This document shows, piece after piece, positions 32,151-64,000 of a stretch of DNA of 64,000 bases. Each line of letters begins with the position of its first letter. Within the stretch, counting starts at the first letter, position 1. Source of the DNA: Piromyces finnis finn (Eukaryota; Fungi; Neocallimastigomycota); contig MCFH01000003.1 of NCBI GenBank assembly GCA_002104945.1, forward strand, positions 372,001-436,000, given 5' to 3'. The position numbers and the translations under genes were made by a program. The notes beneath the pieces were generated by a model. That model searched no databases. It was not told the origin of the DNA and saw nothing but the letters and a program-made list of their open reading frames with translations.

Positions 32151-34733
32151 TTAAGAAGAATATTGGTTATACACAAAACTTACCTTTGTTTGATTGTTGG
32201 TAATAAAACTACCAATACCACGACGTTCCATCATTTCAATTGGGGATACTTGTGAAGTAACTCCAAAACTATGATTATAATTATTATAACCACCAATAAA
32301 ACTTGAATTGACGCTATTATGCTTATTCATCATTACTGGACTTGTTATATTCATACTGTTCATACCCATATAACTCTTTTTATTTCCAAATTCACCACTT
32401 CCACTTAAAAAGCTCATCATTCCTGAATCGTTTAAACTAAACTCTTCTTCTTCTTCTATTTTATTTGGATTGAAACTTTTTACCTTGTTTGCCTTAAGTA
32501 TTGGTGTCATTACTGGTGGTTCAGTTAATTTGGCAGTCTTTTGAAGCTTTACACGAGTTTCTTGTGAAACATGTTGCAAATTACGATAATTAGAGTAATC
32601 TGTAGCTGACTTTGCATTTGTACGGTACCAACCATTAGCAGCAGCAGCAGCAGTTTGGGTTGGGCTTATTGGACTCATTGGATTGGGTGTATTTGAATTT
32701 GACATACTTTTACTATAAATAGATGATTTATCCATTAAGAAAGAAGAATCTTCATCATTCTTTACAGAATAAGCATATTCACTTTCCATGTTTGGAGAGA
32801 GAATACCATTAATACTCATATTTACACTATTCTTTCTTTTTGGAGTAAAGTCCATGGTTTGATTTTCGTATATAGTAGGATAATTTGATTTACTTTCATA
32901 AGCTATTGTAGAAGCAGATTGATTGCCAAGCATTGGTTCTCTTGTTTGACGACCAGTATTCTTTATTGGAATTAATGGTAATGGTTTTCTAATAGTATTA
33001 GTACAGGCACGTACTAAAACATTAATCCATGTTACAACACCTAATTGATCTTCAGCAGCTAAATGGATGCTACCTAATCTTGGATCCTTTAATAAAAAGT
33101 TGTGTTTAACGGCGTTATCGCTATTACTATCAGGTAAGATTTTATAAGTGGCATCTAATTCAAGAATTAAAAGAACCTTGGATTCACTGATATTCACTGA
33201 GCTTTCATCATCACTATCCGGTGATTTTAATATGTAAAGTTTATTATCGATTAATACAACCCAACGCTTTTTCCATTCAACTTCGTCATCGAAACGAACA
33301 GAAAGCCAACCTTTACGTTCAGCATTCTTAAAATCAAGGTTGTTTCCATTGGCGTTTTTGTATTTGTCAGAAGTAGATATAGACATGGAACGTGGTAATT
33401 GGTTTACTGGCATAATACCACTTTGATGGTTTTCACCTTGTAAGGATAAAGAGCGATTACGATTTCCCATGGATCCCATAGTTATTCCGGAGATACCAGT
33501 CATTCCACCATAGCCATTATTAATGGAAGTATTTGAAAGTTCAGATGGTTTATAAACATTAGGAGTAACAGGTAATTCATGATGACGTTTTTCTAAACCA
33601 GTATTGAAATTAACACTTTCGTTGGAAGAATTGGATTTTGGTATCTTTTTACCTTCATCATATTCCATATCGGATTTATCATAGTATTCACTGATAGAAA
33701 AGTTAGAGGAAGATTTATGCATTTTATTATCTTCTTTATCATATTTTATGGAACTACTATTAATACTTTCATAATCAGATACATAAGATGTACTATTACG
33801 ATTAAAGTTACTAAATAACGATTTATTTTCAGAATATTCCTCCCTGAGGGTAAGAATTTCATGAAGAAGTTCTATTCTTTCTGATAAGGAATTAATACCA
33901 TATTCTCTTAATTTTGAAAGATTCAAATCTAATAGTTTATCACCAGTGATATTATTTTCTTTAATAGCTGGGATAATTTTTTCATAGGCAATACTCATAA
34001 GCCATTCGCATACCTCATTAACTGACCAATCTTGTGGTTTTCTAACCTGATTAACTTGTCCAACAACGACTGATATATTTTTTGGTAAAGAAACGGTAGA
34101 TTGTTGGGACTGAGTATGAATAGATGATTGAAAGTAAATATTAGGTTGAGAATAGCTCATAGGTTGACTATTATTATAAGAATTATTACTTTTTATTCTT
34201 ATATCATTAGAAGTAATACGATCCAAATCACCACCCATGGTTCTAAAATTATTAGGAAGAGAAGTACTCACTCTTGGTGAAGAAAGCGGTTTCATACTAG
34301 AAACAGATCCTTCTGGTGAGGAAGGACGATTATCAAAACCAGAAGAATTAGTAGATTCACCTGATTTAGAAAAACTTCTATGAATTCCATCTTGGCTATT
34401 ATTTAAAGATAATGAATTATTAAAGGTACCAAATGGGGATACCATAAGATGATTATTGTAATTGTCTTCGATGATATTTGGAACATAAGAATAACCATTT
34501 TCAAAAAATTTATTAATATTTACATTGAAAATGTTTTCTGTTGTTGTGAAATTTACAGGAAATAAACCTTCATCACCACTTAAGGTACGACCTTTCCACC
34601 AACCATCATTAAATTCTTCATCTTTTTCTAAAACTAAAATAGGATCACCAGTTTGGAATTCAATTTCATCTTCTTCTTCTCTTTCAAATGGATGTTTTCC
34701 AAATATAATTAAAGGTTTAGTTTCTTTTGTCAT
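32151..34733 (-). CDS. BOI1: SH3-SAM-PH polarity scaffold, Boi1/Boi2/Pob1 family
   Basis: N-terminal SH3 (EDEIEFQTGDPILVLEKDEEFNDGWWKGR...EGLFPVNF), SAM (WSVNEVCEWL...ITGDKLLDL), PH (RKGWL...WKKRWVVL...WINVL). A GTAAGT donor at 32183 suggests a final exon I cannot fix. Confidence 0.88.
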   Translation of the reverse strand: MTKETKPLIIFGKHPFEREEEDEIEFQTGDPILVLEKDEEFNDGWWKGRTLSGDEGLFPVNFTTTENIFNVNINKFFENGYSYVPNIIEDNYNNHLMVSPFGTFNNSLSLNNSQDGIHRSFSKSGESTNSSGFDNRPSSPEGSVSSMKPLSSPRVSTSLPNNFRTMGGDLDRITSNDIRIKSNNSYNNSQPMSYSQPNIYFQSSIHTQSQQSTVSLPKNISVVVGQVNQVRKPQDWSVNEVCEWLMSIAYEKIIPAIKENNITGDKLLDLNLSKLREYGINSLSERIELLHEILTLREEYSENKSLFSNFNRNSTSYVSDYESINSSSIKYDKEDNKMHKSSSNFSISEYYDKSDMEYDEGKKIPKSNSSNESVNFNTGLEKRHHELPVTPNVYKPSELSNTSINNGYGGMTGISGITMGSMGNRNRSLSLQGENHQSGIMPVNQLPRSMSISTSDKYKNANGNNLDFKNAERKGWLSVRFDDEVEWKKRWVVLIDNKLYILKSPDSDDESSVNISESKVLLILELDATYKILPDSNSDNAVKHNFLLKDPRLGSIHLAAEDQLGVVTWINVLVRACTNTIRKPLPLIPIKNTGRQTREPMLGNQSASTIAYESKSNYPTIYENQTMDFTPKRKNSVNMSINGILSPNMESEYAYSVKNDEDSSFLMDKSSIYSKSMSNSNTPNPMSPISPTQTAAAAANGWYRTNAKSATDYSNYRNLQHVSQETRVKLQKTAKLTEPPVMTPILKANKVKSFNPNKIEEEEEFSLNDSGMMSFLSGSGEFGNKKSYMGMNSMNITSPVMMNKHNSVNSSFIGGYNNYNHSFGVTSQVSPIEMMERRGIGSFITNNQTKVSFVYNQYSS

Positions 34734-37700: not shown

Positions 37701-38892
37701 AACATTATCATTAGATTGAATATGTAAAGGTATATTAAAAAAAAAAAAAAAAGTATCGTAAAGCAACAACAAATTAAAATGAAATAAACATTATTTTTTT
37801 ATTATTATTAAATATAAATGATTTTGAATAGTTTCAGCAATGACTTTCTCCTCATCATAGAATACCATGAGAAAAAGATAGCTTGGTATTATGATGTTTT
37901 TTTATTTTATATACCCTTATGAAATAGAATGAAATAGACCTCTTCTATTTATTAAATGGAAATATTAAAAATTTATTAATATGAAATAGAAAAAAGTATT
38001 GTAATTGCCATGCTATTATGTAATGCTATTATGCAATAACGCTATTATGTAGTACCATGAATAGAAAAGGATTAAAATTCTTAATAGACTTTTGGTATTA
38101 TTTATGATTATTCATTATTCCTATTATAATAATTATTTATTATAATAAAACTTTATCAACAATATAAATTATTCATATATTTTAATATATTTGTATCACA
38201 TATCATTTATATTGAAATTAGTATATTAGTATTATTCTTTACATTGTTGGTTATACAGAATAAAATTTTAATTTATATTAGAAAAAATTTCCATTGATTT
38301 AGGTATTAAACCTTATTTATTAATAAAAATAAAAATTTCCTTGAATCTATTAAATTTTAATTTATAATAATTAAATAATATTAACTTTAATATATGATAA
38401 ATTAATAAATTTAAATTAAATAATTAATTTCTGTATCACTCAAAATGTTAATTATTCCATAAATAGAAAGTGTTTAATTTTTTTATTAAAACTAAAAAAA
38501 AAAAAAAAACTGAAAGACCTTTTTGAAAGACCTTTTCCTCTTGCTTGTTGGCTTTTTAACTTTTTAACTTGTTGGATTGTTTGGCTGCTTGATTATTATG
38601 GTTAAATAAAAGAGATAAAGGGAAAAAACGAATTTAATTCTTTTCCTTATATTTAAGCATTACATTAATATATTGTTTGTTATTATTCATTCATTACTAT
38701 AAAATATTTATATATATATTTATTTTTTTAACTATATTACTTTCTTTATCATTTTATGGAATGAAGTACTTTTTTTTTTTTGGTTGTTGTTGTCTTTAAA
38801 TTATGTTTAAATTTATTAAAACTTTTTTTTTTTTTTTTTTAATTTTTCTATTTCCATTTTTTAATAATTTCCTTTTAAGATTTAATAAGTTT

Positions 38893-38926
<34 letters not shown>

Positions 38927-39193
38927 GAATGTTGTTAATTCAAAATGCTTTTACAAAAAAAAAAAAGAAAAGATGAAAATTTTTAAAATTTGAGCATTCA
39001 GAAATGTAGATGGACTTTCACTCTATAATTTTTTTTTTTTTTTGAGAAATTGAAAAAGAGGATGAAAGGTAACAATAGTTCTACTAGAGTTTCGCTAATT
39101 ATTTGGACATTTTTAACCATAATAAGAATCAATAAAAAATAATAACAAAAATAGCAACAGCAACACAATGAATGCAATAACTTAACTATTATT

Positions 39194-39197
<4 letters not shown>

Positions 39198-39236
<39 letters not shown>

Positions 39237-39766
39237 TTCCGAGTGCATTTCTCCCATCGATCAGAGTTAGCTCCAATGGTGGTTCTTAGAGAAACGTTGG
39301 CTCATTCCTATTGCTAGGTGGTTGTGACCCTCCTGGTCTGTCATACTGTTTCTTCAGCTTCGACGCTCACTTAATCCATGTACATTAGATGCATGTCGTT
39401 GTACGATATTTCACAACTACAATGCTAAGCCTCTTATAGTCAATTTGATCACGTGTCAACCGCCCCCTAATGTTTACACTTAAATTGATTAAGGAATATT
39501 ATGTGTTTTTGGCATAGCCTAAGTCACCACTTATTAAGTTCTAATTTGGAATGTACCATGTACACTAGACCCTCTCAGGCCGGCTAGACGAGTGTTATTA
39601 TCATAGTAGTAAATTAGAAAGTTCATTTATACTTACCTGAATATCATAACCCAACCCATGGCAAAACCTGGGAAAATCCACAGGCACTGACATCTGCGGG
39701 GTCGAACCAGAAGCCTTATGTATGCTAAGGAAACGCCTTAACAACCAGGATAAAAACTGGAACGAC
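39198..39766 (-). mobile_element. Putative tRNA-derived SINE with LINE-related 3' tail, poly(A) and 13-bp TSD
   Basis: TSD actattatttcaa at 39185-39197 and 39767-39779; T36 at 39198-39233 (poly(A) on minus strand); tRNA-like head with TTAGCAT loop and GGTTCGACCCC B box; 39328-39368 is 37/41 identical to LINE 53353-53393; visibly GC-richer than the flanks. Confidence 0.85.
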
Positions 39767-40652
39767 ACTATTATTTCAAAACTATAAAATTTTCATAAAT
39801 TTTTATTATAGAAAGATCAAAAAAAAAAAAAAAAATTACATTAAAAATAAAATGTTCATTCCTTCAATTTCATTCTATAAAGTAATAATAAAAACCTTTT
39901 TATTATTATTTAAGACTTTAAAATTCAACCATGTCTTTTCTTGTTTTGTTTTGTTTTGTTTTTTCGATATTTTCACCATCTTTCTCATGCATAGTGACAT
40001 TTTTTTTTTGTTTCAAAATAAAATGAAAAAAAATGTTTTAAAAAGTTAAAAATTAATATATAAATTAAAATGTTACATTTTTTAATTAATTTTTTTATTT
40101 TTTATTTATTATTATAATTCTTTTTTAAAAAAATTAAAAGCCATATTGAGGAATTAAAATGATGAGTGCATGTGTTATTTATGTATAATTTACATAAAAC
40201 TATACACTTTTTTTATAGCAAAAGGTAGGTAATATTAATTATAAAAGTTTTATTTTTATAAAAGATAGTTTATAATCATATCTCTATCTACATGTGTTTT
40301 ATTTCAAAAAAGTATTTTCAAAAATAAAAAAAAAAAGAAATTACTTTATTTAATAATATCTTATATAATAGTATCAGTAAAATTCATTAGTAATAGATTT
40401 TTTTATAGTATTTTATTTAAGGGATTAATACAATATATATTAATATGTTAGTTATGATAAAAAAAAATACATAAAGGATTATATTAATATATAAGGAATT
40501 TTAAAAGAAAAAAAAAATAAATAACAATTATTATATAAACATGTTGTATAATCATATCTAGGTGTCTATTAGATGAGGATGATAAATAAATGATTTATTA
40601 ATATATATATTTCAAGAGAAGGAATAATGATAATGACTTTTTATATTGATAA

Positions 40653-53041: not shown

Positions 53042-53081
<40 letters not shown>

Positions 53082-53254
53082 GGCATCAAATATTTTAAAC
53101 TTCATTATTAATTTAATTAAAATTATAATACATGTAATAAAAAATTAAAAATAAATAAAAATAAAAAAAATATGTTTAAATAAACACAAATGAATAAAAT
53201 TTGGGTATAATGTATTCTAGTAATTTTAATTAAAGTAAGAAAGCCACTATCATA

Positions 53255-56200
53255 CTAAAGTATAATAATTGTATTTGACTTCCAATGGGACACCGAGCCA
53301 AAGATCAAAATTTTATCATGGGAAAAATTATGATCTCCATTGGTTGCGCTGGCCCTCCTGGCCTGTCTTACTGTTTCTTCAGCATTGACGCTCTTGGATG
53401 TTGCTTCAAACCTTTTGAACATTGACCATTGCTGGCCAATAGCAAAAGGCATGATTTTGGTTAGAAGTTCCGCGGTTACCGTCAAGAATGGTGTTCCTTC
53501 ATTAGTACCAGATTGAATCTGACGCTTACAAAGTTCTTTCCATTCCCTTGAATTGTAATTAATATTGTTAAAACTTCTTCCCCCAAGAAGGAATTTAAAT
53601 ATTTCACTGCACACACTAGAATAATCATACACATTAATATTCACCGGATTATTAGAACTATTACTATCATCAACTAAATTACTATCTAAATTAGAATTAT
53701 TATCATCACTATTGCTATCATTACTAATATTATTATTTCTATTACTACTATTGTTATTATTACTATTGTTATTATTAATATTATTACTATTACTATTACT
53801 GTTATTGCTATCTCTGCTGATATTAACATTTTCATTATTATTGATAGGACTATTGGAATTACGTTGACTGAAAGAATTTAATAGATGGACTATAGAATCA
53901 TAATGTTTAATACGGATATCTCTAAATGTTGGACAATCTAATAACCAATGTTTAATACTTTGATCTCCACACTTGCAACATGGACAGTAGTTAGGACAAA
54001 CTGGATCAACAAATTTAGCAGATTTGGCAACTCTAGCATCCAACTTGTATCCGCTTCTTGCTTTCAATAGCCAGTAGAAGCCATAGGCAAACTCTGGGTA
54101 CTCATAACATAATTTAATAAAATCTTTAGTTTCACTAAATTTATTATCATCATAATATTGCGCTTTGATTGAATTCCCTTTGAGATCTTTCCAATAAAAG
54201 TTTTTAACTGCTTTAACATCTCCATGTTTCTTTAGTTTTTTATCAAGTGTCCTACTTGATTTGCACCACGTGTATTTTCTAAATTTAGGAATGTAATTGA
54301 CAAGGTGTGAGATAATACAATTTGAGTTTTTCCATTTGTTAAAACATCTAACCTGAGCTAACGCACATTTGGCTGACAATGGAGGAATATTCAAATCTTT
54401 TGAAATAGAGTATAAAGATATAAACGATACAGCTTTATGAACTCCGGCAACCCATCGTATTCCTTTGTTAACATGCTTCTGAGCAATCCTAGACCTAGCT
54501 TTGTTGGATCCAAGTAATGGTGCAAAGTATGAAACTCTGCTAATCACTTGTGAGTTAAGTACTAGTTTTTTGAAGGGAATAGGAATATTAGGATTTCTTA
54601 AGAATTTACTGACTGAGAAAAGTCCTTTCAAAACCTTGTTATTAAGAGCTTTAATTACTGGTTTAAGGGACAGATTCTTATCAAATGGAACACCAAGATA
54701 AGTATAACAATCAGTAGTTGGAATGGGTTGTCCTGCTAAGTAAAATGTTGGATCTCTCTTGTTCTGATTTTCTATTGATTCAGGACGAATCACCATCGTT
54801 GAACACTTCTGGATACCAAATTCCATTTCATTATACAAGGCCCATTCATTAACTCTTCTAAGCATCTTTTTTAAGCATCCTCTTGTTGGAGCACAAATAA
54901 CTATATCATCTGCAAAAAGTCCACCACAACATCGAGTGTCACCTAAACTGACTCCGAGATCTTCACACTCTTTAAATATATCATTAATAAAGAGATTAAA
55001 GAGAATAGGAGAAAGAGGGCATCCTTGACGGACTCCTTTCTTCACATCAAAAGATTTCGAGAATTGTCCATCTAATTTGACATTAGCCTTAGATGTTAAA
55101 TATAAATTTTTGATAAATTGTAGACTCTTACCTCGGATTCCTAAACAATCTAATTTATGGAGAATATTACCGATTGGGACTGAATCGTATGCTTTCCTGA
55201 GATCTAAAAAGGCCAAATATGTCTCTTTATTATCTAATTGACGTCTACGGCATATTTCTTGGATTGAAATGAAAAGACTGATACTTTCTTCCTTTTTTCG
55301 AAAACCAAATTGTTCAGGTCTAATGAAATTATTCTTTAGACCATATTCTGAGATTCTAGTGGTGACAATTTTGGAAATCAACTTAATACCATTATTGATA
55401 AGTGATATACCTCGATAGTTATCACAATCTGTCAAATCTCCCTTCTTAGGAATAGAAACAATACTGGATTCATTCCATGAGTTGGGGAAGTCTCCATCCC
55501 AAATACGGTTGAATAATTTAAGAATAAAATTTAAACCATAAGCATCATTATCTGAAGTGGTATTACCGGAAGAATTATTATCTGTAGCATTATTAGAATC
55601 ATTACTTGATGGAATTAATGCTTTGTAAAATTCAATTGGAATACCATCCGGACCTGATGCTTTATAATTCGGAGTAGAGAGGATAGCTGACTTGACTTCA
55701 TCAATACTAATATCTTGGTTGATATCCCATTCATCAAGCATAGGGAGTGAAAAACGTTTATTCGTTGGTTCTTCATACCAATGCTCCAAATCAAGACTTA
55801 CACCACTTGGATCTGATGCAAGCTTTTCGAAATGATCATGCCACACATCTAGTTGTTCTTCCGTAGCAACAACTAATACTCCATTTTTGTTTTTAATTGG
55901 TTGAGCAATAAAGAAAGAATCTTTTCCAATTTTTGCAGTTTTCTTGATCCATTTCCAGGCCTTCTTAGGATTATGACTTTTCATATACTCACATCCTGTT
56001 TTAATCCAATGAAGATATTCTTGTTTCCTAAATTCATTACATCTTTTGTGGATGTAATCAATGAGCTTACGGTAGATTTTAATTCTTTTAATAAATTCAT
56101 CTATATCATAAATTCTTTCTTTTTTAAATCTCTTATACAACTTCATTTTGATTTTTTGGAGATTAAAAATTTGTTGTGAAATATGAAATGAAGACTTTAT

Positions 56201-57814
56201 AACATTATTTGCTGAGGTAATACTGAGCTCGTCTGCAATTGAAAAAGCAGTTGAAGTAAATTCTTTGGAAAGTTCATCTGTAGAAACATTAGGATCGTTG
56301 AATTTTGCTGAAAGTATTTGGAATTTATTATGACTGAGAATAGATTCCTTTTCCTCAATACATTTTAATCTATTCCATTTCAGAATTTTCTTAGGAACAT
56401 TAAAGTCATTAGAAAAATCATCCATAGGAATAATTTTACCATTAATAAGAAGTGGCTTATGGTCTGATACAGGATAAAAATTATTTATAAATGATGCTGA
56501 GTGAATAAGATCTTTCATCTTCGAATTGATAAGAGCATGGTCAATGTCGGAAGATTGTTCACCTCGAGTCCAAGAGATAGTAGACCCTCTAAGCGGAAGA
56601 ATCTCCCAATCTCCTAATCCATTAGTTGATAACCAGTTGGATAATTTTACTTTAGACATATTAAAATCACCAACAAGAATCGATGGATGGGATGAATGAG
56701 TTTGTAACCACAAGCGAACTTCTAACTTTGCATGATCAACATAGATGTTGTGATGACTATGAGGCATATAAACATTTCCAATCGAGCATTTGAATCTATT
56801 CCAGAGACTAAAAGTATAAATAGAAATAATATACTTTCCAGAGAAGTTTTCAAGTGAGGCTTGACACGAATTGTGAAAACCTAAATATAAACCTCTCATT
56901 CCCGGAACTGATTCGTCAGCTTTCTTGAAAAAGTGTCTATAGTTTCGCAAAGTAACACGACAAGGATAATCTGTATTCGAACCAGAACCATTACCAGTTT
57001 CTTGGAAACATAAGAATAATGGTTTGAAAATAGCTGTGAAATAGCTAATACTATCTCTCTTTTCGTGATTCCACCCATTGGTGTTCCAACTAAGACAAAA
57101 AGAAAAGTTATCAGGCTTGTTGGATGAGGAAGAATCGTTGCTATTATTATTATTATTAAAGTCATCGTTATTAATGGATGATGCATCAGAGGAATAAGTA
57201 GAACTATTACTAGATGGCTGTGAAACTGAAGAACTATCAACTATTGAACTGTTATCAGAGTTGATAGAGCTATTAGAATTAATTGTTGAATGTTGAGATT
57301 GAAATTGTGTTTGCTGTAGATCTGGAATATTTTCATGATGGGAAACTTGTTGAAGATCTTGTTGAAGATCTTGTTGAAGATCGGATTGTTGATGAGATTG
57401 TTGAACTGATTGTTGAAATGATTGTTGAATAGAATGTTGATGTTTATTAGAAACTAAAATTTTACGTTTGAGAGTGGAAAAAGTGTATTTGTGATTCCTT
57501 CTACTACGAGCTGAAAAGGAAATTGAGGTAACTGAAAGTTTCTTCTTTAACATGTGTAAGATTTTAATACAATCTTTCGATGAACCATGAACCTTGACTA
57601 AGAAAAAGTGATCATTGAAAGTCTGAAAATATTTAACACTAATAACTGAATTAAATTTATCTTCTAGAATAACCTCGAGTTTTTCCCATAGCATATTTAC
57701 TGACCATGATCGAATACCACGGATAAAGAAGGAGCGAATATCATCTAAGGGGATACCATAAGACCGGGTACCACGTCTGATATAATTCTTGTCTTTAATA
57801 TAAAGGACTGACAT
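53255..57814 (-). CDS. LINE polyprotein, 1519 aa: RRM-like N-terminus, Gln/Ser linker, APE endonuclease, reverse transcriptase, CCHC knuckle, Asn-rich tail
   Basis: EN motifs SWNTNG, LCFQET, ILVGDFN, SDIDH, SDHKPL; RT motifs YRGISL, QFGFR, FLDLRKAYDSV, GVRQGCPLSPILF, FADD, YLG; knuckle CPCCKCGDQSIKHWLLDC. The RRM-like call is by pattern only. Confidence 0.95.
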   Translation of the reverse strand: MSVLYIKDKNYIRRGTRSYGIPLDDIRSFFIRGIRSWSVNMLWEKLEVILEDKFNSVISVKYFQTFNDHFFLVKVHGSSKDCIKILHMLKKKLSVTSISFSARSRRNHKYTFSTLKRKILVSNKHQHSIQQSFQQSVQQSHQQSDLQQDLQQDLQQVSHHENIPDLQQTQFQSQHSTINSNSSINSDNSSIVDSSSVSQPSSNSSTYSSDASSINNDDFNNNNNSNDSSSSNKPDNFSFCLSWNTNGWNHEKRDSISYFTAIFKPLFLCFQETGNGSGSNTDYPCRVTLRNYRHFFKKADESVPGMRGLYLGFHNSCQASLENFSGKYIISIYTFSLWNRFKCSIGNVYMPHSHHNIYVDHAKLEVRLWLQTHSSHPSILVGDFNMSKVKLSNWLSTNGLGDWEILPLRGSTISWTRGEQSSDIDHALINSKMKDLIHSASFINNFYPVSDHKPLLINGKIIPMDDFSNDFNVPKKILKWNRLKCIEEKESILSHNKFQILSAKFNDPNVSTDELSKEFTSTAFSIADELSITSANNVIKSSFHISQQIFNLQKIKMKLYKRFKKERIYDIDEFIKRIKIYRKLIDYIHKRCNEFRKQEYLHWIKTGCEYMKSHNPKKAWKWIKKTAKIGKDSFFIAQPIKNKNGVLVVATEEQLDVWHDHFEKLASDPSGVSLDLEHWYEEPTNKRFSLPMLDEWDINQDISIDEVKSAILSTPNYKASGPDGIPIEFYKALIPSSNDSNNATDNNSSGNTTSDNDAYGLNFILKLFNRIWDGDFPNSWNESSIVSIPKKGDLTDCDNYRGISLINNGIKLISKIVTTRISEYGLKNNFIRPEQFGFRKKEESISLFISIQEICRRRQLDNKETYLAFLDLRKAYDSVPIGNILHKLDCLGIRGKSLQFIKNLYLTSKANVKLDGQFSKSFDVKKGVRQGCPLSPILFNLFINDIFKECEDLGVSLGDTRCCGGLFADDIVICAPTRGCLKKMLRRVNEWALYNEMEFGIQKCSTMVIRPESIENQNKRDPTFYLAGQPIPTTDCYTYLGVPFDKNLSLKPVIKALNNKVLKGLFSVSKFLRNPNIPIPFKKLVLNSQVISRVSYFAPLLGSNKARSRIAQKHVNKGIRWVAGVHKAVSFISLYSISKDLNIPPLSAKCALAQVRCFNKWKNSNCIISHLVNYIPKFRKYTWCKSSRTLDKKLKKHGDVKAVKNFYWKDLKGNSIKAQYYDDNKFSETKDFIKLCYEYPEFAYGFYWLLKARSGYKLDARVAKSAKFVDPVCPNYCPCCKCGDQSIKHWLLDCPTFRDIRIKHYDSIVHLLNSFSQRNSNSPINNNENVNISRDSNNSNSNSNNINNNNSNNNNSSNRNNNISNDSNSDDNNSNLDSNLVDDSNSSNNPVNINVYDYSSVCSEIFKFLLGGRSFNNINYNSREWKELCKRQIQSGTNEGTPFLTVTAELLTKIMPFAIGQQWSMFKRFEATSKSVNAEETVRQARRASATNGDHNFSHDKILIFGSVSHWKSNTIIIL

Positions 57815-58458
57815 GATAATAAATTCTAATTAAAAATATTGAATATAAAATAAATACTAATAAAAATTATAAATATAACGTATATGGAAAAAAAATCTGT
57901 CTCTCTCTCTCTTCTTAAAAGTACTGGATAGTACAAAAATTGTTACGATGCTTTGTTTAAAGTTTCTTTTTTTTGAATTCTAGTTGTAAATTTTCTTTAA
58001 AAATTCTAGTTTTGGTTTGTTGTTAGTAAATTCGAATCGCTTTTTGACACTAAAATTGTTTGACTTTACTTTTCATTAAATATTTAAATTGGTAAAAAAT
58101 TTGAATCAAGAATGTCGACACCAGAAAGCTTGTGAATAGTATTTTTACATGATGTAGAGTGAATCAGTCTCTTACAAGAAACAATACAACAATAGCTACA
58201 TGAATATAAAAATACAATGCAAATGCTAAAGTTGACTACATTGGATTCTTACAAGAGAAGAGTAGTACTACATGAATACATGAATAAAAGAAAAAATACA
58301 GCAACAAAATGTATTACTCTTCTAATTAAATACTATACAAACTTACCTGAATATCAAACATTCAACTTATTCATCAAATACTTAATTCGATGAATAAAAT
58401 GTTTTTTAATCGCTCAGTACCATGAGCTTAGTCCTAATAAATTTCCCTTAAAGACTAA

Positions 58459-58705
58459 CCAAGCATCCATTGCGCAATGCTTGGATTTAATTCTTCCTAC
58501 TCTCTCAGTACCATGAGCATGAGTAGACCCCCTTGAGAAACTACATTTATTAAATAAAATGAAGGCACGTTTCCAAGAGGGCACCAAGCATCCATTGCGC
58601 AATACTTGGATTTAATTCTTTCTACTCTCTCAGTACCATGAGCATGAGTAGACCCCCTTGAGAAACTACATTTATTAAATAAATGAAGGCACGTTCCCAA
58701 GAGGG
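58459..58705. repeat. Two tandem ~125-bp structured monomers at the 5' end of LINE copy A
   Basis: 58459-58583 and 58584-58705 differ by a few substitutions and one 1-bp indel; a 15-bp piece (ctcagtaccatgagc) recurs at 58413-58427. Confidence 0.95.
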
Positions 58706-58719
58706 AGTTCATCAATACT

Positions 58720-58721
<2 letters not shown>

Positions 58722-58752
<31 letters not shown>

Positions 58753-61700
58753 GGCATCAAATATTTTAAACTTTATTATTAATTTAATTAAAATTATAAT
58801 ACATGTAATAAAAAATTAAAAATAAAAATAAAAATAAAAAAAATATGTTTAAATAAACACAAATGAATAAAAATTGGGTATAATGTATTCTAGTAATTTT
58901 AATTAAAGTAAGAAAGCCACTATCATACTAAAGTATAATAATTGTATTTGATTTCCAATGGGACACCGAGCCAAAGATCAAAATTTTGTCATGGAACAAA
59001 ATTATGATCTCCATTGGTTGCGCTGGCCCTCCTGGCCTGTCTTACTGTTTCTTCAGCATTGACGCTCTTGGATGTTGCTTCAAACCTTTTGAACATTGTC
59101 CATTGCTGGCCAATAGCAAAAGGCATGATTTTGGTTAGAAGTTCCGCGGTTACCGTCAAGAATGGTGTTCCTTCGTTAGTATCAGATTGAATCTGACGCT
59201 TACAAAGTTCTTTCCATTCCCTTGAATTGTAATTAATATTGTTAAAACTTCTTCCCCCAAGAAGGAATTTAAATATTTTACTGTACACACTAGAATAATC
59301 ATACACATTAATATTCACCGGATTATTAGAACTATTACTATCATTAACTAAATTACTATCTAAATTAGAATTATTATCTTCACTATTGCTATCATTACTA
59401 ATATTATTATTTCTATTATTGTTATTATTACTATTGTTACTATTACTATTGTTACTATTACTATTGTTATTACTACTATTGTTACTATTACTATTAATGT
59501 TATTACTATCTCTACTGATATTATCAATTTCATTATTATTGATAGGACTATTGGAATTACGTTGACTGAAAAAATTTAATAGCTGAACTATGGAATCATA
59601 ATGTTTAATACGGATATCTCTAAATGTTGGACAATCTAATAACCAATGTTTAATACTTTGAACACCACACTTGCAACATGGACAGTAGTTAGGACAAACT
59701 GGATCAACAAATTTGGCAGCTTTGGCAACTCTAGCATCCAACTTGTATCCGCTTCTTGCTTTCAATAGCCAGTAGAAGCCATAGGCAAACTCTGGGTATT
59801 CATAACATAATTTAATAAAATCTTTAGTTTCAATAAATTTATTATCATCATAATATTGCGCTTTGATTGAATTCCCTTTGAAATCTTTCCAATAAAAGTT
59901 TTTAACTGCTTTAACATCTCCATGTTTCTTTAGTTTTTTATCAAGTGTCCTACTTGATTTGCACCACGTGTATTTTCTAAATTTAGGAATGTAATTGACA
60001 AGGTGTGAGATAATACAATTTGAGTTTTTCCATTTGTTAAAACATCTAACCTGAGCTAACGCACATTTGGCTGACAATGGAGGAATATTCAAATCTTTTG
60101 AAATAGAGTATAAAGATATAAACGATACAGCTTTATGAACTCCGGCAACCCATCGTATTCCTTTGTTAACATGCTTCTGAGCAATTCTAGACCTAGCTTT
60201 GTTGGATCCAAGTAATGGTGCAAAGTATGAAACTCTGCTGATTACTTGTGAGTTAAGTACTAGTTTTTTGAAAGGAATAGGAATATTAGGATTTCTTAAG
60301 AATTTACTGACTGAGAAAAGTCCTTTCAAAACCTTGTTATTAAGAGCTTTAATTACTGGTTTAAGGGACAGATTCTTATCAAATGGAACACCAAGATAAG
60401 TATAGCAATCAGTAGTTGGAATGGGTTGTCCTGCTAAGTAAAATGTTGGATCTCTCTTGTTCTGATTTTCTATTGATTCAGGACGAATCACCATCGTTGA
60501 ACATTTCTGGATACCAAATTCCATTTCATTATACAGTGCCCATTCATTAACTCTTCTAAGCATCTTTTTTAAGCATCCTCTTGTTGGAGCACAAATAACT
60601 ATATCATCTGCAAAAAGTCCACCACAGCATCGAGTGTCACCTAAACTGACTCCTAGATCTTCGCACTCTCTAAATATATCATTAATAAAGAGATTAAAGA
60701 GAATAGGAGAAAGAGGGCATCCTTGACGGACTCCTTTCTTCACATCAAAAGATTTCGAGAATTGTCCATCTAATTTGACATTAGCCTTAGATGTTAAATA
60801 TAAATTTTTGATAAATTGTAGACTCTTACCTCGGATTCCTAAACAATCTAATTTATGGAGAATATTACCGATTGGGACTGAATCGTATGCTTTCCTGAGA
60901 TCTAAAAAGGCCAAATATGTCTCTTTATTATCTAATTGACGTCTACGGCATATTTCTTGGATTGAAATGAAAAGACTGATACTTTCTTCCTTTTTTCGAA
61001 AACCAAATTGTTCAGGTCTAATGAAATTATTCTTTAGACCATATTCTGAGATTCTAGTGGTGACAATTTTGGAGATCAACTTAATACCATTATTGATAAG
61101 TGATATACCTCGATAGTTATCACAATCTGTCAAATCTCCCTTCTTAGGAATAGAAACAATACTGGATTCATTCCATGAGTTGGGGAAATCTCCATCCCAA
61201 ATACGGTTAAATAATTTAAGAATAAAATTTAAACCATGAGCGTCATTATCTGAAGTAGTATTACCAGAAGAATTATTACCTGTAGCATTATTAGAATCAT
61301 TACTTGATGGAATTAATGCTTTGTAAAATTCAATTGGAATACCATCTGGACCTGATGCTTTATAATTTGGAGTAGAGAGGATAGCTGACTTGACTTCATC
61401 AATACTAATATCTTGGTTGATATCCCACTCATCAAGCATAGGAAGTGAAAAACGTTTATTCATTGGTTCTTCATACCAATGCTCAAAATCAAGACTTACA
61501 CCACTTGGGTCTGATGCAAGATTTTCGAAATGATCATGCCACACTTCTAGTTGTTCTTCCGTAGCAACAACTAATTCTCCATTTTTATTTTTAATTGGTT
61601 GAGCAATAAAGAAAGAATCTTTTCCAATTTTTGCAGTTTTCTTGATCCATTTCCAGGCCTTCTTAGGATTATGACTCTTCATATACTCACATCCTGTTTT

Positions 61701-62881
61701 AATCCAATGAAGATATTCTTGTTTCCTAAATTCATTACATCTTTTGTGGATGTAATCAATGAGCTTACGGTAGATTTTAATTCTTTTAATAAATTCATCT
61801 ATATCATAAATTCTTTCTTTTTTAAATCTCTTATACAACTTCATTTTGATTTTTTGAAGATTAAAAATTTGTTGTGAAATATGAAATGAAGACTTTATAA
61901 CATTATTTGCTGAAGTAATACTGAGCTCGTCTGCAATTGAAAAAGCAGTTGAAGTAAACTCTTTGGAAAGTTCATCTGTTGAAACATTAGGATCGTTGAA
62001 TTTTGCTGAAAGTATTTGGAATTTATTATGACTGAGAATAGATTCCTTTTCCTCAATACATTTTAATCTATTCCATTTCAGAATTTTCTTAGGAACATTA
62101 AAGTCATTAGAAAAATCTTCCATAGGAATAATTTTACCATTAATAAGAAGTGGCTTATGGTCTGATACAGGATAAAAATTATTTATAAATGATCCTGAGT
62201 GAATAAGATCTTTCATCTTCGAATTGATAAGAGCATGGTCAATGTCGGAAGATTGATCACCTCGAGTCCAAGAGATAGTAGACCCTCTAAGCGGAAGAAT
62301 TTCCCAATCTCCTAATCCATTAGTTGATAACCAGTTGGATAATTTTACTTTAGACATATTAAAATCACCAACAAGAATCGATGGATGGGATGAATGAGTT
62401 TGTAACCACAAGCGAACTTCTAACTTTGCATGATCAACATAGATGTTGTGATGACTATGAGGCATATAAACATTTCCAATCGAGCATTTGAATCTATTCC
62501 AGAGACTAAAAGTATAAATAGAAATAATATACTTTCCAGAGAAGTTTTCAAGTGAGGCTTGACACGAATTGTGAAAACCTAAATATAAACCTCTCATTCC
62601 AGGAACTGATTCATCAGCTTTCTTGAAAAAGTGTCTATAGTTTCGCAAAGTAACACGACAAGGATAATCTGTATTCGATCCAGAACCATTACCAGTTTCT
62701 TGGAAACATAAAAATAATGGTTTGAAAATAGCTGTGAAATAGCTAATACTATCTCTCTTTTCATGATTCCACCCATTAGTGTTCCAACTAAGACAAAAAG
62801 AAAAGTTATCAGGCTTGATGGATGAGGAAGAATCGTTGCTGTTATTATTATTATCAAGGTCATCATTATTAATGGATGATG
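58722..62881 (-). mobile_element. LINE copy B, 5'-truncated, with EN-RT-knuckle frame still open
   Basis: T28 at 58722-58749, same 3' UTR as A, open frame 58989 to about 62880; homology to A ends at aatggatgatg (62881), within the pre-EN linker. Confidence 0.96.
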
Positions 62882-62895
62882 AGGGCAACTGAAAT

Positions 62896-62898
<3 letters not shown>

Positions 62899-62934
<36 letters not shown>

Positions 62935-64000
62935 GGCATCAAATATTTTAAACTTTATTATTAATTTAATTAAAATTATAATACATGTAATAAAAAATTA
63001 AAAATAAATAAAAATAAAAAAAAATATGTTTAATAAACACAAATGAATAAAAATTGGGTATAATGTATTCTAGTAATTTTAATTAAAGTAAGAAAGCCAC
63101 TATCATACTAAAGTATAATAATTGTATTTGACTTCCAATGGGACACCGAGCCAAAGATCAAAATTTTGTCATGGAACAAAATTATGATCTCCATTGGTTG
63201 CGCTGGCCCTCCTGGCCTGTCTTACTGTTTCTTCAGCATTGACGCTCTTGGATGTTGCTTCAAACCTTTTGAACATTGACCATTGCTGGCCAATAGCAAA
63301 AGGCATGATTTTGGTTAGAAGTTCCGCGGTTACCGTCAAGAATGGTGTTCCTTCATTAGTACCAGATTGAATCTGACGCTTACAAAGTTCTTTCCATTCC
63401 CTTGAATTGTAATTAATATTGTTAAAACTTCTTCCCCCAAGAAGGAATTTAAATATTTTACTGCACACACTAGAATAATCATACACATTAATATTCACCG
63501 GATTATTAGAACTATTACTATCATTAACTAAATTACTATCTAAATTAGAATTATTATCTTCACTATTGCTATCATTATTAATATTATTATTTCTATTACT
63601 ACTATTGTTATTATTACTATTTCTATTATTACTATTACTACTATTGTTATTATTACTATTGTTATAATTATTATTGTTACTATTACTATTACTGTTATTG
63701 CTATCTCTACTGATATTATCAATTTCATTATTATTGATAGGACTATTGGAATTACGTTGACTGAAAAAATTTAATAGCTGGACTATGGAATCATAATGTT
63801 TAATACGGATATCTCTAAATGTTGGACAATCTAATAACCAATGTTTAATACTTTGATCTCCACACTTGCAACATGGACAGTAGTTAGGACAAACTGGATC
63901 AACAAATTTAGCAGCTTTGGCAACTCTAGCATCCAACTTATATCCGCTTCTTGCTTTCAATAGCCAGTAGAAGCCATAGGCAAACTCTGGGTACTCATAA
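62899..64000 (-). mobile_element. LINE copy C, 3' part, running off the window
   Basis: T33 at 62899-62931, same 3' UTR and C-terminal coding region as A and B. Confidence 0.96.

Follow-up and report, generated by a model that had tools for sequence, protein, structure and literature searches.

The 569-bp insert on the minus strand of the window (the whole 64-kb stretch of DNA analysed here) is a real and young SINE. We consider it very probable that it represents a full-length copy of an abundant Piromyces finnis family of SINE-type retroposons, moved by the proposed mechanism of target-primed reverse transcription (TPRT) with the help of a LINE.

The insert and its copies

The features of the insert are listed below in window coordinates.

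39185-39197, no strand: target-site duplication (TSD) copy at the poly(A) end; exact 13-mer with two occurrences in the window
39198-39233, minus strand: A36 tail (T36 on the plus strand), from direct reading and homopolymer ranking
39234-39318, minus strand: 3'-terminal 85 nt, unlike the LINE 3' UTR and every fetched locus
39319-39368, minus strand: LINE-derived two-hairpin module (sense 399-448), 85% identical to three LINE copies, with covariation
39369-39686, minus strand: body without detectable relative, containing a 16-nt splice-donor-like motif at 39631-39646
39687-39766, minus strand: head, with a B box (39698-39708), TTAGCAT (39722-39728), a weak A-box-like stretch (approximately 39742-39752) and T5 (39752-39756)
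39767-39779, no strand: TSD copy at the 5' end, the same 13-mer; the family 5' boundary at 39766 is set by contigs entering other flanks

The insert is 569 bp long, of which 533 bp precede the tail; it runs on the minus strand from 39766 to 39234, followed by A36 to 39198. It is bounded by the 13-bp duplication ACTATTATTTCAA (39185-39197 and 39767-39779), both copies of which adjoin it exactly. This 13-mer occurs twice in the 64-kb window, 0.04 occurrences being expected, and when random pairs of 60-nt stretches from this AT-rich DNA were compared, a repeat of at least 13 nt arose in about 0.9% of trials. The T36 run on the plus strand at 39198-39233 is the pure A36 tail of the minus-strand element; together with two LINE tails it makes up the three longest homopolymer runs of the window. 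Insert, exact duplication and A36 had all been described by the sequence-only reading, and each was confirmed in the window. An A-tail together with a target-site duplication is the hallmark of TPRT. The nick deduced from the junction, TTTCAA/AACT on the plus strand, is unlike the classic L1 nick site, TTTT/AA, and, coming from one copy, defines no site preference.

The GC content of the insert is 41.5% against 19.5% in its flanks, the window mean being approximately 20%. Its longest ORF has 55 codons' worth of amino acids (55 aa), which bears out the earlier statement that it encodes no protein; at 533 nt plus A36 it lies under the approximately 700 bp expected of a non-coding SINE. Seven pseudo-ORFs of the element were absent from the protein collection searched, an Rfam search of the insert matched no family, and the fold of the whole element is no more stable than that of shuffled sequences (z -0.42). 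Elsewhere in the window, the 860-aa product of the ORF at 32151-34733 shows 100% identity to a protein recorded under the name of Piromyces finnis, so that the host of the element is a fungus of the anaerobic gut group; exact look-ups of the window ORFs returned no record.

The abundance of the element was assessed by mapping Logan contigs of four runs on positions 38700-40300. In DNA run X3, 942 contigs fell on this stretch, with a depth of 150,000-575,000 in the element against about 4-240 in those flank bins having any depth; the summed depth in the element is thus some 10^3-10^4 times that of the flanks, it being understood that summed word depth is not copy number and that AT-rich flanks may be under-sequenced. 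Taken from this depth, a family size of the order of 10^3 copies is suggested. Several of the DNA-run contigs continue into differing flanks exactly at 39766, and this position is therefore a 5' end shared by the family. Many contigs, a common 5' boundary and differing flanks are what dispersed copies would give; distinct TSDs rest on the loose ends of contigs. The window itself holds one copy. A single copy only, which the sequence-only reading had named as grounds for abandoning its proposal, is contradicted by the 942 contigs and by the differing flanks at 39766.

The only departures of this copy from the majority sequence are one at 39666 and a 2-bp gap following 39668, and a 505-nt contig from another run is one letter and a 2-bp indel away from it. 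Because of this near-identity to the majority, the perfect TSD and the pure tail, the copy is young.

Other collections were also consulted. Exact 23-mers from the body and head of the SINE had no match in metagenome, genome and viral contig collections, and of the words sampled 18-29% were present in gut metagenomes. The region upstream of the orthologue in Piromyces sp. E2 (L089) showed no SINE, 7126 of its 12705 bases being N.

The head of the element and its RNA

The head carries GGTTCGANNCC, a consensus B box, at 39698-39708 (sense 59-69). It is the single match in 64 kb on both strands, and none was found in 100 shuffles. Its spacing would set the start of a type-2 promoter near position 1, which is the family 5' boundary. 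Counted back from the B box by direct reading, AGC falls at tRNA positions 34-36 within a seven-base loop, TTAGCAT. Pairing of the tRNA kind, also by direct reading, is found in the T-stem (4/5), the D-stem (3/4) and the anticodon stem (2/5), with hardly any in the acceptor stem, and an A-box-like stretch fits about 6 of the 9 specified positions. The Rfam tRNA model gave no match at E-values up to 10, even with 111 nt searched, and ARAGORN made no call with its thresholds set to 85% or more of the defaults. At 80% thresholds ARAGORN made a call of 94 nt, which was rejected as meaningless. For comparison, tRNA genes were sought in the window and in 80 fetched loci, and none was present.

The tRNA head proposed earlier is accordingly retained in part: the B box and the tRNA-like geometry stand and are what favours a tRNA origin, which we regard as partly supported, and the two tRNA searches go against it. 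Judged from these sequence features, transcription of the SINE by Pol III is likely.

In RNA run X4 the depth was 28,000-205,000 over the element and 0-52 over its flanks; perfectly matching contigs had depths of up to about 23,000. The depth is thus high in RNA-labelled runs, in the reading of which it must be borne in mind that DNA or read-through transcripts may be present in such libraries. Near-identical SINE contigs (on 39255-39757) were also encountered at a depth of 3-6 in RNA runs assigned by their labels to other organisms (X2 and X7). Given the enormous depth in the organism of runs X3 and X4 (organism A), sample carry-over or labelling is a more likely source of these contigs than presence in other species.

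The principal competing account accepts a LINE-mobilised poly(A) retroposon and has its RNA made by Pol II or by read-through, the tRNA-like features being relics or coincidence. It would agree with the tRNA models finding no match, with the length of the element (533 nt) and with the sense-strand runs of T in the first 105 nt (T5 at 11-15, T4 at both 91 and 101). These runs are potential Pol III terminators, and they are spanned by the near-full-length 505-nt contig, itself from an RNA library. The exact B box speaks against it, however, being the only one in 64 kb and placing the start near position 1, at the 5' boundary that the copies share. We therefore hold this account to be unlikely, and prefer a Pol III-type promoter in the head.

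The resident LINE and the shared module

Three LINE copies lie at 53-64 kb of the window.

53042-58721, minus strand: LINE copy A, full length; poly(A) 53042-53081, ORF 53255-57814, module 53341-53393, monomers 58458-58705
58722-62898, minus strand: LINE copy B, 5'-truncated, 97.3% identical to A; module 59015-59067
62899-64000, minus strand: LINE copy C, running off the window, 94.4% identical to A; module 63195-63247

Copy A possesses an uninterrupted ORF of 1519 aa with an APE endonuclease domain (30.1 bits; Pfam cut-off 24.5) and an RT domain. The best solved relative of its protein is human L1 ORF2p (E-value 7e-33), and relatives of the LINE protein bear Orpinomyces and Neocallimastix names. 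An intact APE-RT ORF thus lies 13 kb from the SINE, in a LINE whose copies are 94-97% alike, and we infer from this that the LINE may mobilise the SINE in trans.

The three copies share one orientation in a head-to-tail array, each with a T run of the plus strand at its end, and their 5' ends begin immediately behind the poly(A) of the neighbouring copy (e.g. 58721 after the T run at 58722-58752). Since the 5' ends abut the poly(A) of the next copy, repeated insertion into or beside existing A-tails is suggested as the origin of the array. The leader of copy A contains two tandem 125-bp monomers, 96% alike (58458-58705), reminiscent of the promoter monomers found in the 5' UTR of mouse L1 elements.

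The SINE matches this LINE over a short stretch. Sense positions 399-448 align with 53393-53341, 59067-59015 and 63247-63195 at 85% identity over 53 columns (E-value approximately 1e-11), and this internal 50-nt module is the only significant similarity between SINE and LINE in the window. On the LINE side the module is coding (KSVNAEETVRQARRASAT); it falls within the terminal part of the APE-RT ORF, ending 86 nt short of the final base of the stop codon. Its GC3 is 0.56 against 0.25 for the whole ORF. The distance from the module to the poly(A) is 260-310 nt in the LINE and 85 nt in the SINE, and a comparison of the last 85 nt of the SINE with the 173-nt LINE 3' UTR gave no match. A 3' terminus common to both, as in stringent LINE-SINE pairs, was thus not found, the common part being internal and, in the LINE, coding. 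The sequence-only reading had spoken of a LINE tail. The homology is real (85%, 50 nt), but as the match is internal and the terminal sequences differ, the "tail" is an internal module from the ORF end and not the LINE 3' end. The further proposal that the insert is a non-autonomous partner of this LINE lineage is supported by the module: among 11 lineages the resident LINE is the best match, with 85% identity as against 75-81% for the ten others.

A 16-nt sequence resembling a consensus splice donor, TGATATTCAGGTAAGT, is identical in the SINE (39631-39646) and in the leader of LINE copy A (58341-58356), with an E-value of 0.005-0.03 within the window. The 16-mer was absent from the leaders of the other fetched module-bearing LINE lineages, and a splice-donor motif was found in one of the 12 leaders searched (L003).

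The module was then considered as an RNA, in an alignment of 12 rows comprising the SINE and 11 LINE lineages, i.e. the resident LINE and ten from gut-fungal metagenome and transcriptome contigs. Two hairpins can be formed, at columns 13-37 and 39-51, with 84.6% of the cells paired. Changes on both sides of a pair occur in 7 of 13 pairs, against 2.8 +/- 1.2 in shuffles (0 of 500 as high) and 1-3 with slid partners, the structure having been derived from the same 12 sequences on which its covariation was scored. RNAalifold, run unguided, returned the same two helices. Some of the compensatory changes are at third codon positions, for example U-A to C-G at columns 21/30 in two lineages, and at columns 14/36 a change of Val to Ala is paired with a synonymous change in Arg. 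Between the SINE and LINE copy A the second hairpin differs by one exchange of A-U for G-C. The folding energy of the SINE module alone is unremarkable in comparison with shuffles (z -0.74), so that support for the hairpins comes from covariation and not from energy. The encoded peptide may explain part of the conservation of the module in the LINEs.

In two distant LINE lineages (L006:3698-3763 and L007:6492-6557) the first hairpin is preserved through exchanged base pairs, and L006 has a different small hairpin (AGAA/UUCU) where the second would stand.

The 50 nt common with the LINE ORF end and the 16-nt motif common with the LINE leader could be taken to mean that the insert arose from the neighbouring LINE by internal deletion or 5' truncation. 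Colinear similarity over most of its length was nevertheless lacking, the similar part being 50 plus 16 of 533 nt; about 467 of the 533 nt are unlike any LINE copy in the window or in the fetched LINE loci, the 3' ends differ, and the 16-mer does not recur in the leaders of the other module-bearing lineages fetched, all of which renders such a derivation highly improbable. That the insert is a single processed pseudogene derived from a cellular RNA, or that it arose in assembly, would suit the one copy seen in the window but is hardly to be entertained in view of the contigs, hundreds in number, that independent DNA and RNA runs place on it, their common 5' boundary and the Rfam search without a matching family.

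For the SINE family that we favour, the following course of events is proposed. The SINE RNA would start at position 1 (39766), probably from an internal promoter of the Pol III type in the tRNA-like head, and would end in the A-tail. The APE-RT protein of the resident L1-like LINE would nick the target and reverse-transcribe from the poly(A), giving rise to the 13-bp duplication. The two-hairpin module of 50 nt, presumably copied from the LINE ORF end, would be a likely extra handle by which the LINE machinery takes the SINE RNA. The poly(A) alone may be enough for mobilisation, since the module is internal and the 3' ends of LINE and SINE differ.

More tentatively, and with rather less than an even balance of confidence, it may be proposed that the hairpins in the last codons of the LINE act in cis as a handle for its own protein and were captured by the SINE, so that stringent recognition would operate alongside the poly(A). 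To our knowledge, such a coupling of LINE and SINE, by a handle in coding sequence together with poly(A), has not been described for L1-like elements. If correct, it would also account for the unusual success of this SINE in a fungus of an early-diverging lineage. Whatever its function, the covarying module offers a testable candidate for the choice of RNA template by an L1-like enzyme.

Comparison with other LINE-SINE systems

The sequence-only reading knew of no described family matching the element, and full-text searches on SINEs and non-LTR elements in Neocallimastigomycota or Piromyces yielded no paper. The SINE can be compared with three kinds of known system.

Stringent pairs such as UnaL2/UnaSINE1 resemble the present case in having a conserved stem-loop common to LINE and SINE, the pairing of which is kept by compensatory changes. 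There, LINE and SINE have their extreme 3' end in common, located in the UTR beside short repeats. The Piromyces module, in contrast, is situated inside the LINE ORF and away from both poly(A) tails, and the terminal sequences differ.

Alu and B1 with L1, which are mobilised in the relaxed, poly(A)-dependent manner, are similar in their L1-like APE-RT partner with poly(A), long pure A-tail and 13-bp TSD. The head of Alu is derived from 7SL, and Alu is not known to have any sequence in common with L1. The Piromyces SINE differs in sharing a 50-nt structured module with its LINE, and its head is tRNA-like at best.

The tRNA-derived SINEs of fungi include MgSINE of Magnaporthe, Foxy of Fusarium and AfuSINE2 of Aspergillus fumigatus, all from Dikarya and present in approximately 5-160 copies (PMC5063351). 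These elements, compared here by description, are likewise short and non-coding, with A/B-box heads, TSDs and a dependence on LINE-like elements. The heads of AfuSINE2 also fail to fold as a cloverleaf, and AfuSINE2-1a resembles a LINE 3' UTR (PMC5063351). The Piromyces SINE, by contrast, belongs to the Neocallimastigomycota, has a depth suggestive of about 10^3 copies, and carries a LINE-derived part that is internal and comes from coding sequence.

The described fungal SINEs are few, low in copy number and known from Dikarya alone (PMC5063351). In the literature searched, a family of some thousand copies or more, highly transcribed and resident in an anaerobic gut fungus, would be the first of its phylum. 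Such a family would make up a visible share of the repeats in a genome of 20% GC, and its insertions would be ready markers for Piromyces strains. Many of the DNA contigs follow the element only in part, after which they diverge, or they leave out 73-280 nt (at 39412, 39568 and 39668), which points to subfamilies or to related families sharing segments with this SINE.
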